Positions 24,107 to 58,460 of a stretch of 64,000 bases of DNA are shown piece by piece. This DNA is from Octopus sinensis. Lineage: Eukaryota. The position numbers were made by a program, and so were the translations under genes. Position 1 is the stretch's first letter, and every line of letters starts with the position of its first letter. The stretch spans positions 88,350,001 through 88,414,000 of the forward strand of contig NC_042997.1 in NCBI RefSeq assembly GCF_006345805.1, in the 5' to 3' direction. The notes below the pieces were generated by a model. It searched no databases. It saw only the letters and a program-made list of their open reading frames with translations, and was not told the origin of the DNA.

Positions 24107-24609
24107 CTAAAAGTGACTAAGGGTGCAAGTCAGCATCAGCATTGCTAGAAATAAAGTCAAGACAACTCTTAGTCATGAACAGAGCATTTTCTGTTCAAAG
24201 AGCACTATCCATTGGCTGACAAGGGAGACAGCCTCCCTACTGCAAGTGACGACACCAGATCACCAGTGATTTCAGATCAAATTAATCCTCATCAGTGACT
24301 AAAATGGTAAAGTGATAATTATCATTTTACCATTTTACTGAATCAGCCACTGATTTGTATGGTATTTTTTATAAACTGACAAGTCAAGTTAGCTTAACCA
24401 TAGGCAATGGAGTAGCATCACCAATGAGGATTAATTTGATCCAACATCACCGATGATCTGGTGCCCTCGCTTACTGTAGGGAGGTTATCTCCTTTGTCAG
24501 TCAATAGATAGTGTGTTTTGAACAGAAAATACTCAGCTCATAGCTAAGAGTTGTCTTGACTCTTATTTCTAGCATTGCTGTGCTGATTTGCACCTTTAGT
24601 CACTTTTAG
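24107..24609. repeat. 503-bp inverted-repeat element (about 190-bp arms) with a hammerhead motif at the inner end of each arm
   Basis: 24107-24298 aligns by eye to the reverse complement of 24418-24609 at roughly 85% identity; no clear target-site duplication. Confidence 0.9.
24255..24298 (-). ncRNA. Minimal type I hammerhead ribozyme motif (core intact)
   Basis: Minus strand: TCA-CTGATGA-GGATT aattt GATCT-GAAA-TCA ctgg TGA-T-C-TGG; stem I 3 bp with one G.U, stem II closed by G.U, AUC triplet. Confidence 0.72.
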
Positions 24610-24799
24610 TGATGATTTGTACTTGTGCCTTTTGGTTTTAAATTGTGACTAGCCACATTGATAATTTATATAGATGTGTGTGTGTGTGTATATATATATA
24701 TATATATATATATATATATACACACACACACACATATATATGTCATCATAATCATTTAATATCCATGTTCCATGCTGTTGTGTGTTTGATGGTTTTACA

Positions 24800-25030
24800 G
24801 GATCTGAAGGAGTGTGGTCGTTGCCAGACTGGCCCTCATGCTGGTGGCACATAAAAGCACCCACTACACTCTCGGAGTGGTTGGTATTAGGAAGGGCATC
24901 CAGCAGTAGAAACTTTAGCAGATCAGATTGGAGCCTGGTGCAGCCTTCTGGCTCACCAGTCCTCAGTCAAACCGTCCAACCTATGCCAGCATGAAAAGCA
25001 GACATTAAACAACGATGATGATGATGATGC
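24800..25030 (+). mobile_element. SINE-like family C
   Basis: GGAGTGGTTGGTATTAGGAAGGGCATCCAGC body; CTATGCCAGCATGAAAAGCAGACATTAAAC-(GAT)n tail. Confidence 0.75.
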
Positions 25031-25223
25031 ATATATGTATACATAAGCATATATATGTGTGTGTGTGGGTATGTATATATATATATGTGTATGTGTATAT
25101 ACACTATCTATCTATCTATCATCATCATCATCATCATTTAACGTCCGCTTTCCATGCTAGCATGGGTTATATATATATATATATATATATATATATATAT
25201 ATATATATATATATATATATATA

Positions 25224-25456
25224 CAGGGTTGGCCAAAAGTCATCTGACAGTAAATCAAAACCATTTAATTCCAAGATTTATTTGTTTAGCTACTGAATGA
25301 GACTTCACTAACAAATACACAAATGTTGAAAAAATGGTGATTTTACCTCACAACATTCAATTATAAAACATTCATAACTAGAATGAATAAATATAATTGA
25401 ATATTAAGTATTTATGGAATTTTGATTTACTGTTGGGTGACTTTTGGCCAACCCTC
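25224..25456. mobile_element. Tc1/mariner-type MITE, 233 bp
   Basis: About 37-bp TIRs CAGGGTTGGCCAAAAGTCATCTGACAGTAAATCAAAA / TTTTGATTTACTGTTGGGTGACTTTTGGCCAACCCTC; TA flanks within TA microsatellite. Confidence 0.85.
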
Positions 25457-25459
25457 TAT

Positions 25460-25700
25460 ATGTGTGTATATATGTATATATACATATATATGTATATATA
25501 TATATATGTGTGTGTATATATATATACATACATACATGTGTGTATATGTACATATATATATATATCTATATATGCATACATATATGTATATATACACTTA
25601 TATATACACATGTATATATGTATATATACATATATGTATATATACACTTATATATACACATGTATATATATATATATATATATATATATATATATATATG
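25460..25700. repeat. Complex TA/TG/CA microsatellite directly upstream of the intact HHR
   Basis: Direct reading; source of several spurious ORFs. Confidence 0.95.
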
Positions 25701-54790: not shown

Positions 54791-55194
54791 AAAAGATTTT
54801 TAAATGAAGAATAATTCACTGAAAATGCTCAACAGATAATTATAAATAGTAAGGAATTACTCTGGGCAATAACATTAATCTAAAATGTACACATATATTT
54901 ATGACTGCTGATGATGGTATGTTCTCTGAAAATTAGTCATGGTTCTGCATATGAATTCATCTGCAGCAAGCTTTGCTTATGAAGAGTTATTACAACTCTG
55001 GACATCAGAGTCATCTTCTCTGGATTTTCAGCTATAAAATTCTAGCATTTCACTAATATGATGTGGTGTTTCTGCTGGATTTTCTAAACCTTATGTTCCA
55101 GAGAGTCATAGATGAACCATCTTCTCTGTTCTCCATAATTTATCTCATCCAGATATTTTAACAATGGCAAGATTAATTTCAAATCATTTTGTTT

Positions 55195-56190
55195 GGCCTA
55201 TTCTGCAAAAGTACATTCTCCTGCCAAAAAGCCAAGGTTAAGCACACTTTCCCTACTCCTGATGCTTATTTCAAGCATATCCATGTAGATATCATGGGTC
55301 ATCTTCAATCAAGTCAAGATAAAATGTATCTTTTGATCTGCATACACCATTTTTTCCAGATGGTCTGAAGCCATACCAATTAAGGACATTTCATCCCTCT
55401 AATGGCCAAATAGATTTCATATTTTGGAGCACCTATGACAATAACAACCAACAGAGGTCATCAGTTTGAATCTAGTCTTTTTGACAACCTATCTAACTTG
55501 CTAGGTAAGCATTAAATTCATACTACAGCTTACCATCCTATGTCTAACAGAATGATAGAACGTTTTTATCGTCAGCTTAAAGCAGTTTTATGCAGCTTTA
55601 CAAGTACATTCTGATTCAGATAGATGATTAGAAGACCTGCTGGTTGTGTTACTAGATTTATGTGTACCACTGTTAAGAAAAACCCAGGTTACTCCTTAGC
55701 AGAATTACTGTATGGTTTGGCACTTACACTGCCTGTTCAAATGATATTGTCTATAGTTACTCAACATGATTCTACCAATTATATTCATCAGCTGTGAAAT
55801 TACAGTCTCCTTAATAATAGGACTGCAGTTGATTAAAACTTTTGTTCTACCAATGTCAATACCTGGACTCATGTAATTGTATGCAATGATGTAGTTAAGT
55901 ATCCCTTGCAGAGAGTTAATTCTAGATTGTACCATGCATTAAAAGCTACACCAAAGTAAATGGTTTTGGACATTCAAGGAAGACAAGAGACTGTCAAAGT
56001 TGATTGATTTCAGCAGCCTTTTGTCATGTCTATTCCCCTCCCACAAAACTCCTCCTCCTCTTTGTCACACCCACACAATCTACACATAAACATAATGCTT
56101 TATCTATCAACAGTACATTTCATACTGATAGAGTAAGCAAGAGTGGAAGAAAAGTACATTGGCCAGCCAGATACATTTGCACTTATTTTT
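55195..56190 (+). mobile_element. Ty3/Gypsy integrase remnant
   Basis: FKHIHVDIMGHL, FGAPMTITTNRGHQFES, TTAYHPMSNRMIERFYRQLKA, C-terminal SKSGRKVHWPAR; stops and frameshifts. Confidence 0.85.
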
Positions 56191-56446
56191 ATTAACACCA
56201 AAACACACACAAAAATTCTTTTTAAAGTTACCTGAAAAAAAAAAAGAACTGCAGAACTTTGCATTTTCTATGAACTTTTCATTGTGGCATGAACATATCT
56301 TTCAAGAATTTTTCAGTATTCAGTGCATGTCGTTTTTTTTTTTCTTTTAGCACTTGCATTGGTCTCTCTCTCTCTCTCTCTTTTTATGTAAATTCTCTTT
56401 TTATTGTTTAGTTCTTACATTTTATGCAAAGAACTGTAAAAGGACT

Positions 56447-57045
56447 TGTAGTGAACTCTAGTGAGCTTCCCCACTTATATTAAGTACATACAAACATAGC
56501 AGGTAACAGCTAGCCTTTGGGTGCTGTTTTGGACCCCGTTGTGTTTACCACTCTGATTGGTTGACATTGGCGCAATTTGTTTCATACTCTATTGTGCACC
56601 AATATGCAACCCAACCAATCACAACCTGCAAATAAGTCATGTGAGACAGTCTGTTCCAAACAAGCATTTGAGCCTACCCATCAGCTATAAAAACTCGCCT
56701 CTTCCTAGACCCAACGTCAATTGGTCCCAGACTTTCTAAGGCCTAACCACTGACCACCTTGCAGTGACCTCCATCTTCATTGCCACACCAGATGTCTCTC
56801 ACCAACGTCGTCAACATCTACACAGCACCAACACATTGCTCTGATTCCTACATCGCTGTTCATGAGCTTCTCACCAGGGTTAACAGCTTACATACAACCC
56901 ATGCAGATGTCTGTAAATACATATAAAAGTCCATCGACCATTCTATTCATCATTCCATTGTGTATATATGTGTGTGACCACAATAAACATGCTAAAGTTA
57001 CCACCTTGTGTTTTATACATTCTTTACCAGGTTCCTACCACCACA
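56447..57045 (+). mobile_element. Possible 3' LTR of the Gypsy element
   Basis: Starts TGTAG shortly after the integrase end, AATAAA near 56982, ends in CA; no second copy in the window. Confidence 0.25.
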
Positions 57046-58156
57046 AGAACATAACTACCTTCTGAGAGTTTCATTAGATGACACCACAACATATAACATC
57101 TAAAGACTATTTGTAGAGTGATTCAAAATCTAACTGCTTGGTAACCAGTCATGCATCATGATCAAACCATAGTAGTTTCATATCATTGGTCTATTAAGCA
57201 ATACTGCCATAAACTCCTAGCAGTATGCCTCTCCTAGTAATAACTGTTGCTGTTATTATTTGTTTGTAAAAGACCAATGTCAGTTACTTCACACAGTTTT
57301 ATTCATCAACCCAATCGGTCATCACCTCAGACCAACCAACAAAAGCCTGCTAGTGCTATGACTTTGCAAGATGAGTACCAAGAAAGCATACCAAAGAAAA
57401 TAAGCATAATAGTATGGAGATCTGTTAACATTTACTTGATTGCTACAATGATGAAAGCAAAGCTTTTTTTGAGAGAACAGTCACAAGAGATAAGACCTGA
57501 AGCAATCACTTTGAGCCAGAATCCAAAAGGCAGAGCATGGCATGGAAAGATCTGGAATCACCAGCCAAAAAGAAATTCAAGATTCACAGAATAACTGAAG
57601 CTAACCAGTTTTGGGACACAAAAGGGACTATATTGGAACATTACCTGGAAGAGGTGTCTACAGCCTCCAGTGTAGGCTAGAGTGAAATGCTGGCCAACAA
57701 ACTGAAACTGGTAATTCACATAACACCAAAGTCATTAGTCAAATCAAGTGTTAATATTGCATGACAATACACACCCGCATATGGCCATCCACATCGTTGA
57801 AACCACTGAAAAATTGAGTTTTGAGTTGCTGTAACATCCTGCACACAGTCCACATCTAGCCTCCTCCAACTATCATATCTTTGGACCACTCAAACATTCT
57901 TTACTAAGTCATTGATTTGTTACAGACAAAGAAGCACAAGAAGCAATGCATAAATGGCTACATGACCAGCCAAAATCTTCTCCAATGGAATAAGCAAGCT
58001 TGTTGACCACAGGAAGAAGTGCATTGAAAAACAAGGAGATTATGTTGAAAAATGATGTAATTGTTCAAACCCTGCTTTTGTTAATAAACTAAACAAGTGT
58101 GCATATAATTTCTGTCTTACCCTTGTGTGTGTATATATATATATATATATATATAT

Positions 58157-58460
58157 ATCAACAATCAAGGAACGGCCATAATAGGCCATTCACCCACTAG
58201 AAATAACAGCCAAAGCTTCAACCGCAAATAAAAATCAATTCCGTAAACAGGAGAAAATTTAAAAAACATTTACCCTGTAATTTCTTATACGATGCACCGT
58301 TTCATCTGCTGATGAAACGGTGCATCGTATAAGAAATTACAGGGTAAATGTTTTTTAAATTTTCTCCTGTTTACGGAATTGATTTTTATTTGCGGTTGAA
58401 GCTTTGGCTGTTATTTCTAGTGGGTGAATGGCCTATTATGGCCGTTCCTTGATTGTTGAT
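58157..58460. repeat. Perfect palindrome: two 150-bp arms with a 4-nt loop (TGCT)
   Basis: 58157-58306 is the exact reverse complement of 58311-58460 on base-by-base reading; flanked by TA microsatellite. Confidence 0.95.

Follow-up and report, generated by a model that had tools for sequence, protein, structure and literature searches.

The stretch of Octopus sinensis DNA analyzed here (contig NC_042997.1, positions 88,350,001 to 88,414,000; from here: the window, 64,000 nt) contains three inverted repeats, E1 (24107–24609), E2 (28256–28790) and E3 (58157–58460), and a single hammerhead ribozyme (HHR) motif at 25705–25790 (from here: the solo motif). A first-pass annotation had presented E1, E2 and E3 as three sequence-distinct inverted repeats in or beside microsatellites. 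All three are real, they share no significant pairwise similarity, and all of them adjoin dinucleotide microsatellites, as does 9.2% of the window. The annotation had also proposed a recurrent architecture, namely a class of short non-autonomous derivatives of Penelope-like elements (PLEs) with outward-reading type I HHRs. Of this class one instance is left, E1, as E2 is a miniature inverted-repeat transposable element (MITE) and E3 lacks an HHR.

HHR motifs were searched with two descriptors; for the type I descriptor, 400 dinucleotide-preserving shuffles of the window provided the background. This descriptor asks for, in order, helix I (at least 3 bp), CUGANGA, helix II (at least 3 bp), GAAA, helix III (at least 2 bp, with A15.1-U16.1 as its closing pair) and H17; G:U pairs are permitted. 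The second descriptor imitates the published minimal HHR (min-HHR) of PLEs and has a self-complementary 15.1-16.1 stretch in place of helix III. On both strands of the window the type I descriptor has exactly two matches, the solo motif (25705–25790, plus strand) and a site in the left arm of E1 (24299–24254, minus strand), which stand less than 1.5 kb apart. The expected number per window is 0.15 in the permissive form and 0.01 in a strict form (helix I of at least 4 bp, helix II of at least 5 bp, lengths as observed). The PLE-style descriptor finds the solo motif as its one match (0.007 expected), and among the sites tested the CUGANGA...GAAA...U-H core in type I order occurs in the solo motif and the left arm of E1 alone. 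A type I HHR, or the 3′ half of one, had been annotated in both arms of every element; one arm out of six, the left arm of E1, fits the type I descriptor. For the 3′ half, defined as GAAA followed by at least 8 self-complementary nt and H, the window has 20 occurrences and the shuffles 18.3. The pattern therefore carries no information, and the 3′ half in E3 was rejected as evidence.

Covariance model searches with Rfam gave a similar picture. At the gathering threshold, 4227 families yielded no match in the whole window. Scans of 23.5–29.5 kb and 57.8–58.8 kb at E ≤ 10 reported no hammerhead family, and neither did narrow searches of E1, E2 and E3 at E ≤ 10. Pseudo-miRNA and hairpin matches of the permissive scans, located on microsatellites and on the E3 hairpin, were rejected as low-complexity artefacts. 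Nine inverted repeats in the window are not microsatellites, and six of them lack CTGATGA. Outward-reading CTGATGA boxes occur three times in the arms (0.37 expected, P = 0.007 in a post hoc test), each in only one arm of its inverted repeat.

The solo motif (plus strand, C17 at 25786) was found by both descriptors. It is laid out as uuccCUGAUGA, a helix II of 59 nt (GAAGA.../...UCUUC), GAA, ACAUAUGU and C|ggaa. The core is perfect, and helix I has 4 bp. Positions 9 and 10.1 follow each other with no unpaired base in between, and the palindrome ACAUAUGU makes up helix III. All min-HHR features are present: the G10.1-C11.1 pair, a short helix I, a long helix II and a palindromic 15.x-16.x stretch. 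The Rfam model Hammerhead_1 (RF00163) aligns with the motif over its full length (model positions 1–45) with a 55-nt insertion in helix II and scores 18.9 bits (E = 0.019 in a 116-nt search), under its gathering score of 34 bits; rescaled to this model alone over the whole window, E becomes ~ 0.003. RNAfold recovers the long helix II in both the minimum free energy (MFE) and the centroid structure, the latter including helix I. The motif lies in a non-microsatellite fragment that sits in (TA)n and ends at ~ 25830. Hence, the annotation of an intact solo HHR at 25705 in a microsatellite context was right as far as the motif is concerned. We consider it a credible Penelope-type minimal type I HHR, as predicted from sequence. 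It would be the relic of an HHR-bearing pseudo-long terminal repeat (pLTR) of a PLE, or of a PLE-mobilized non-autonomous unit, within a (TA)n tract, and with its palindromic helix III it should be capable of cleavage only as a dimer or with the help of protein. The AUG within the CUGAUGA box starts an open reading frame (ORF) of 31 codons (25709–25804, end at 25802–25804) that is probably meaningless. A gapped pattern derived from the motif had four matches in metagenomes; the one inspected, L001, lacks helix II and looks like a chance match.

E1 is an old full palindrome inserted beside (CA)n/(TA)n, with its axis at 24318|24319 (GATAA|TTATC) and arms of ~ 212 nt. Among 211 positions aligned between the arms there are 28 differences (13% divergence). 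One gapless stretch of 144 nt matches at 83%, and a BLAST comparison of 24107–24609 with its own reverse complement aligned 533 columns at 74%. Two insertions are found in the right arm, one of 8 nt (~ 24337–24344) and one of 71 nt (24353–24423). The latter is bordered by an imperfect 7-nt direct repeat, CACTGAT / CACCAAT, which suggests a small insertion or slippage duplication within the former CUGAUGA box. As RNA, E1 folds at −289.8 kcal/mol (z = −27). A target site duplication (TSD) is not visible at the flanks GGCT|...|TGAT, and the termini have no further copy within the window. The arm differences comprise 22 transitions and 6 transversions, and the transitions are split on the plus strand into 10 G:U and 12 A.C. 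As neither G:U nor A.C predominates, the differences bear no editing footprint and no mark of selection on an RNA hairpin; both readings were rejected, and neutral decay is argued.

The left arm of E1 carries the second HHR-like motif (24254–24299, minus strand, C17 at 24258; gucaCUGAUGAggauuaauuugaucuGAAaucacuggugauC|uggu), which fits the type I descriptor and reads outward. Its helices I and II are rich in AU and GU pairs, helix III has 4–5 bp, and positions 10.1-11.1 form a G:U pair, so that the features of the PLE min-HHR are present only in part. A decayed counterpart occupies 24348–24463 of the right arm (plus strand) and reads CACUG, the 71-nt insertion, AUGAGGAUUAAUUUGAUCC AACA UCACCGAUGAUC UGGUG. 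Here the CUGAUGA box is split by the insertion (CACUG|...|AUGAGG), GAAA has become AACA, and G12 and A14 are mutated. The ribozyme pair annotated in E1 is thus borne out for the left arm, which fits the descriptor in outward orientation, and fails for the right arm, which is broken; neither copy is likely to be active now. Only two changes between the HHRs of the two arms are one-sided, U to C at 11.1 and at 2.3, and both are compatible with pairing. At these positions the right arm has the more canonical bases, C11.1 restoring G10.1-C11.1 and C2.3 replacing a wobble. As a hint taken from two sequences only, this fits two copies of one ancestral HHR that decayed independently.

Read outward, each arm of E1 consists of 19 nt, the 46-nt HHR-like motif, 103 nt followed by the 10-mer TTATTTCTAG, and 38 nt to the end (GTCACTTTTAG). 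From the cleavage site to the outer end these are 103 nt, 10 nt and a 38-nt tail, 151 nt in total. The arms share one inner end and the loop at the axis is 0 nt. This exact symmetry together with the zero-length loop argues for a single fold-back event and not for two independent insertions. The earlier suggestion of a fold-back at or near the ribozyme is supported in so far as E1 is a fold-back palindrome. Its axis is not at the ribozyme: it lies 19 nt upstream of helix I and 23 nt upstream of the CUGAUGA box. We infer that E1 is a head-to-head palindrome of a short module, the HHR-like motif plus ~ 150 nt, which most likely arose in one event. That event would most likely be target-primed reverse transcription by a PLE enzyme, in which the cDNA snapped back ~ 20 nt upstream of the ribozyme, and E1 would have decayed neutrally since.

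In case of E2, the element proper extends from 28258 to 28788 and is flanked by TA at 28256–28257 and 28789–28790. Its arms (28256–28411 and 28623–28790) are ~ 79–81% alike, with one stretch of 83 nt at 81% plus terminal stretches. A short relative is located at 13332–13506; the element itself (13334–13504, 171 bp) has TA on each side and forms a hairpin with 73-nt arms that are 93% alike and a 31-nt loop. Both elements begin and end with CTTTTAT...ATAAAAG and have the end TACTTTTAT..GTCAAGTA in common, and all three occurrences of the 20-mer TACTTTTATKTNGTCAAGTA in the window are at their ends. Considering the common terminal repeats, the TA flanks and the transposase remnants described below, E2 is a MITE of the Tc1/mariner type; both E2 and 13332–13506 are non-autonomous members of this type. 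They would have been moved by a transposase that binds the common terminal inverted repeats (TIRs) and inserts at TA. In their TIRs, TA flanks, short length, lack of coding capacity and hairpin shape, as well as in having ends common to copies of different internal content, they resemble the Stowaway-like MITEs of the Tc1/mariner group, from which E2 does not differ in substance. E1 and E3, in contrast, have neither a TA duplication nor a terminal repeat that is common elsewhere in the window.

The CTGATGA of E2 (28683) is found in the right arm, while the left arm reads CTGATGT. No helix II adjoins the core; 2 nt lie between the best candidate for a helix II and the GAAA, and position 17 is a G. 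The GAAA itself belongs to a segment that is conserved in the short relative, which lacks the internal segment with the CTGATGA. A non-canonical HHR, with the fold forced by hand, would need 2 extra nt before G12 and a G at 17, and was rejected. The CTGATGA at 28683 is incidental and no part of an HHR. E2 had been counted as a ribozyme-bearing member of the class; what it has are the TIRs and TA flanks of a DNA transposon, and no HHR. In all five elements discussed here, a perfect dinucleotide run is found no more than 60 nt from at least one end; the association with microsatellites is real but common to MITEs, too.

Transposase remnants occur at three places. A Mos1-type mariner remnant with HTH_48 and Transposase_1 matches is located at 5834–6469 (minus strand) and a remnant with a weak Tc3-type helix-turn-helix match at 53563–53844 (minus strand). 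A DDE-like fragment without a Pfam match (14020–14244, minus strand) lies 500 bp from the short MITE.

E3 is a very young perfect palindrome without a hammerhead. Its arms of 150 nt (58157–58306 and 58311–58460) are, as assembled, 100% complementary and enclose the 4-nt loop TGCT (58307–58310); as RNA, it folds at −267.6 kcal/mol (z = −42). The flanks TATAT|...|GTTG show no TSD, there is no further copy of the termini within the window, and a 24-mer of E3 had no match in metagenomes. An HHR or half-HHR had been annotated in both arms. However, CTGATGA is present on the plus strand only (CTGATGAAAC), where its C and U are loop bases, and the minus strand reads CAGATGAAAC; a helix II is missing on either strand, and Rfam is silent. 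The arms start with GAUGAAAC; a self-complementary stretch of 12 nt comes next, and then GUA. Towards the outer end the tail forms an 8-bp stem-loop, GAAUGGCC-UAUUAU-GGCCGUUC (58426–58447, plus strand; mirror at 58170–58191, minus strand), 13 nt from the end. At its left end E3 abuts (TA)n, and on the right 104 nt of unique DNA (58461–58564) separate it from the next (AT)n. This segment contains a 12-bp hairpin, GGTGGCAAAAAA...TTTTTTTGCCACC, and the sequence CCCACTAG, which is also present in the E3 arms; it has no significant similarity to E3.

A sequence shared by two of the elements, 38–40 nt inside their outer ends (24145 and 58197), had been noted before and is confirmed as TTATTTCTAG, the reverse complement of CTAGAAATAA. 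In E1 it occupies 24563–24572 (plus strand) with its mirror at 24145–24154 (minus strand), 38 nt inside the left end and 37 nt in the right arm. In E3 the positions are 58411–58420 (plus strand) and 58197–58206 (minus strand), 40 nt inside each outer end. Four of the five exact copies in the window belong to the arms of E1 and E3. When 150-mers are drawn at random from the window, a 10-mer in common with E1 turns up at a matching offset, to within 3 nt, at a frequency of 0.0015. The placement of TTATTTCTAG, 38–40 nt inside the outer ends, hints at a "tail" of the Penelope-like kind. A mutual comparison of E1, E2, E3, the solo fragment and the right flank of E3 gave nothing significant (E1 versus E3 overall, z = 2.9). 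E3 could be a fold-back insertion like E1, because both share the subterminal TTATTTCTAG and the 38–40-nt tail. A hairpin MITE is an equally good candidate, and so is a duplication that arose locally by fold-back at a fragile (TA)n tract. The last of these, if it took place where a TA tract was broken, would leave flanks like those of E3, too.

Apart from these elements, the window contains exon-like ORF pieces of a gene similar to cyclic nucleotide-gated (CNG) channels on the plus strand between 5100 and 16310 (~ 5.1–5.25 kb, 7604–7888, 12714–12790 and 16200–16310). Their best matches are ORFs of 83–108 aa on contigs of 1–3 kb with at most 88% identity, one of them with PF00027; for a comparison with empty orthologous sites these contigs are too short and too diverged. 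E1, the solo motif and E2 are located downstream of the apparent 3′ end of this gene. A 180-aa ORF at 21848–22390 had no homologue in a protein search. A SINE-like family of ~ 400 bp is abundant; its copies (946–1103, 2232–2418, 2990–3262, 38321–38487, 39877–40255, 40389–40769, 41081–41489, 43741–43918, 54358–54728 and 63327–63717) are 67–88% alike, with the head TACTCTTTTACTTGTTTCAGTCATTTGACTGTGGCCATGCTGGAG and a microsatellite-rich tail. Two copies form a tail-to-tail inverted pair around (TA)n (39879–40769), which is one of the nine non-microsatellite inverted repeats, and ARAGORN detected no tRNA-derived heads of short interspersed nuclear elements (SINEs). A second interspersed family with 70–86% similarity occurs at 7951–8143, 9639–9782, 24823–25041 and 36818–37007, the third of these copies lying between E1 and the solo motif. 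An element of 1.2 kb (45157–46347) has inverted repeats (CCCTTTAGCATTTAAACCAG.../...CTGGTTTAAATGCTAAAGGG) and TTAA directly to its right; its ends are reminiscent of the piggyBac type, and a related copy is found at 52098–52326. A direct repeat of ~ 560 bp with 73% identity (59500–60062 and 60989–61505) has its copies ~ 1.5 kb apart.

The solo motif and E1 can be compared with several described systems. Min-HHRs are present in the pLTRs of all canonical PLEs, thousands of dispersed single HHR motifs have been attributed to truncated PLEs, and pairs of min-HHRs on opposite strands, 100–700 bp apart, have been reported already (Cervera & De la Pena 2014, PMC4209133). The solo motif resembles them in its core, the 4-bp helix I, the long helix II, G10.1-C11.1, the dimer-competent palindromic ACAUAUGU and its occurrence as a dispersed single copy, and E1 resembles the opposite-strand pairs. 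The differences are a helix II of 7–8 bp in the published min-HHRs compared to 59 nt in the solo motif, in which the unpaired base between positions 9 and 10.1 is also missing, the G:U at 10.1-11.1 and the 4–5-bp helix III in E1, and the absence of a PLE ORF nearby.

Adjacent inverted 5′-truncated PLE copies, tails of 30–40 bp and HHRs near the 3′ ends are known as well, together with an insertion bias for (TA)n and (CA)n microsatellites (Craig et al. 2021, PMC8557442). The enzyme of Poseidon of Anolis (PAc) nicks both DNA strands, extends them and has a preference for AT-rich targets (Frangieh et al. 2024, PMC11167929). In this system the HHR cleaves at +26 and reverse transcription begins at +111–118, i.e. 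111–118 nt into the ORF; the minimal RNA template spans +20 to +172, and the tail of 30–40 bp is the sequence between the two start sites (PMC11167929). Like such inverted insertions (PMC8557442, PMC11167929), E1 is arranged head-to-head with its 3′ ends outward, lies beside a microsatellite and has no discernible TSD. Its 151 nt from cut to end fall within the range of the PAc minimal template (+20 to +172, cut at +26), and the subterminal motif with the 38–40-nt terminal stretch of E1 and E3 recalls the PLE tails of 30–40 bp. The layout of E1 may therefore be said to parallel PAc, judging from one element. In the described PLE cases, a truncated copy lies inverted next to an element that is itself full or partial, whereas E1 and E3 are stand-alone, exactly symmetric and non-coding, with loops of 0–4 nt. 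Their symmetry and short loops imply a self-templated fold-back instead of two independent priming events.

Metazoan non-LTR retrozymes, "solo" monomers among them, have been proposed to derive from PLEs and to be mobilized by them (Cervera & de la Pena 2020, PMC7229834; Li et al. 2026 preprint, doi 10.64898/2026.07.22.740005). Their defining features are repeats in head-to-tail tandem and RNA intermediates that are circular. Short length (~ 150–400 nt), AT richness, lack of coding capacity, a type I HHR and the existence of solo monomers agree with the elements studied here. However, tandem arrays define the class, and here only an inverted pair and a single copy exist: Tandem Repeats Finder located no tandem array at or near 24.1–24.6, 25.7 or 58.2 kb besides the microsatellites, and the self-BLAST found inverted copies only. 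For E3, fold-back duplication at breaks or hairpin-prone microsatellites is a further parallel, which matches the perfect arms, the 4-nt spacer and the unique DNA on one side with (TA)n on the other, but does not predict the 10-mer common with E1 at the same offset.

The reading that we favor, with moderate confidence, is that unrelated repeats were lumped together: a MITE (E2), an HHR relic (the solo motif), an old fold-back copy (E1) and an HHR-free palindrome (E3). Probably these have no more in common than their palindromic shape and their position beside microsatellites. The anatomy of the elements, the motif statistics and the kinship of the two MITEs are demonstrated, whereas a PLE origin and the fold-back mechanism are inferred. 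A link to PLEs and hammerheads is plausible for two of them, the solo motif and E1. Several observations weigh against the favored reading. The score of the solo motif stays below the Rfam gathering threshold, its helix II is unusually long, and only ~ 45 nt follow 3′ of the cleavage site. The HHR fold of the left E1 motif is energetically unfavorable (+1.8 kcal/mol compared to an MFE of −10.9), it is absent from the Rfam matches (E ≤ 10) of a 251-nt search, and it could be a chance match inside a palindrome that exists at the DNA level. Self-BLAST found no other copies of E1, E3 or the solo fragment in the window. Among 10 selected ORFs searched against Pfam, there was none for a PLE reverse transcriptase (RT) or GIY-YIG domain; the sole RT match was a generic RVT_1 at 51116–51713 (plus strand), which reads like the RT of a long interspersed nuclear element (LINE) and is far from the elements. 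Finally, the enrichment of outward CTGATGA boxes in the arms has to be handled as partly coincidence. By eye, further RT-like fragments at 44464–44892 (minus strand), 63637–63897 (plus strand) and 37958–38332 (minus strand) were judged LINE-like, none of them Penelope-like.

As what remains of the annotated class, E1 and E3, without E2, might instead form a class of short non-autonomous palindromes, mobilized by PLEs through snap-back, which we regard as unlikely. Members of such a class would carry the ribozyme or its remnant at the inner end of the arm and TTATTTCTAG plus tail at the outer end, and their transcripts would be long double-stranded RNA (dsRNA), a layout to which we give an equally low probability. 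The 10-mer that lies equally far inside the outer ends in the two elements (P ~ 0.0015) speaks for it, as do the completeness of both palindromes with loops of 0–4 nt, the microsatellites beside both, the three outward CTGATGA boxes in arms where 0.37 are expected, the arrangement of GAUGAAAC, 12-nt self-complementary stretch and GUA in the E3 arms, and the ability of the PAc protein to prime reverse transcription on both strands (PMC11167929). Nevertheless, E3 lacks a helix II, its CTGATGA borrows loop bases and is confined to one strand, the 3′ half pattern is at chance level (20 versus 18.3), the overall similarity of E1 and E3 is not significant (z = 2.9), each of them is a single instance, and Rfam sees a hammerhead in neither.

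We give a similarly small chance to an explanation without any ribozyme biology, in which E1, E2 and E3 would be hairpin MITEs or fold-back duplications at fragile TA/CA microsatellites. It is doubtful to the same degree that all HHR-like motifs, including the solo motif, are chance matches in AT-rich DNA. E2 and 13332–13506 are demonstrably MITEs, several other inverted repeats in the window are free of HHRs, the left HHR fold of E1 is unfavorable and every motif scores below the Rfam gathering score. Moreover, the asymmetric flanks of E3, whose left end touches (TA)n and whose right end is followed by 104 unique nt, fit a local fold-back copy, and extrapolation from the shuffles to a multi-gigabase genome gives thousands of chance matches to a permissive descriptor. 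What this explanation leaves unaccounted for are two descriptor matches within 1.5 kb where 0.01–0.15 are expected per 64 kb, and features of the solo motif that the type I descriptor does not require, such as G10.1-C11.1, the palindromic ACAUAUGU and the full-length Rfam alignment (E ~ 0.003 rescaled). At 11.1 and 2.3, the right arm of E1 departs from the left motif with the canonical bases of an HHR (C11.1, C2.3), and E1 and E3 are without a TSD.

Improbable to a still greater degree is that E1 and E3 represent two ages of an undescribed retro-palindrome, i.e. non-coding modules mobilized by a PLE enzyme as symmetric snap-back hairpins, for which an arrangement with the ribozyme end at the axis and a conserved TTATTTCTAG-plus-40-nt tail at both outer ends has the same slight probability. 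If true, such retro-palindromes would be the retroelement counterpart of hairpin MITEs and would seed perfect dsRNA hairpins of 150–200 bp beside microsatellites. Cephalopod genomes are known for heavy RNA editing.

Even on the most favorable reading, the pieces fall within described PLE behavior. The head-to-head configuration, which the annotation did not know to be described in cephalopods, is not new: opposite-strand HHR pairs (PMC4209133) and inverted truncated copies (PMC8557442) are already published. What may be new is limited to the stand-alone snap-back form with its exact symmetry, for which two single-copy examples and one 10-mer are the basis. In the octopus repeat surveys consulted, Penelope elements and Tc1/mariner MITEs are listed, and hammerheads go unmentioned.

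Our results illustrate that a CTGATGA near the axis of a palindrome does not equal a ribozyme, and that the palindromic repeats beside microsatellites in this window stem from at least two unrelated mechanisms. If genuine, the solo motif and E1 would be further HHR-bearing PLE remnants, for which we found no earlier report in this lineage. Such remnants are useful to repeat annotation and ribozyme catalogues, and they are expected from the known universal association of PLEs with HHRs. The origin of the exact palindromes, by priming on both strands or by snap-back, would bear on the puzzling inverted structures of PLEs.

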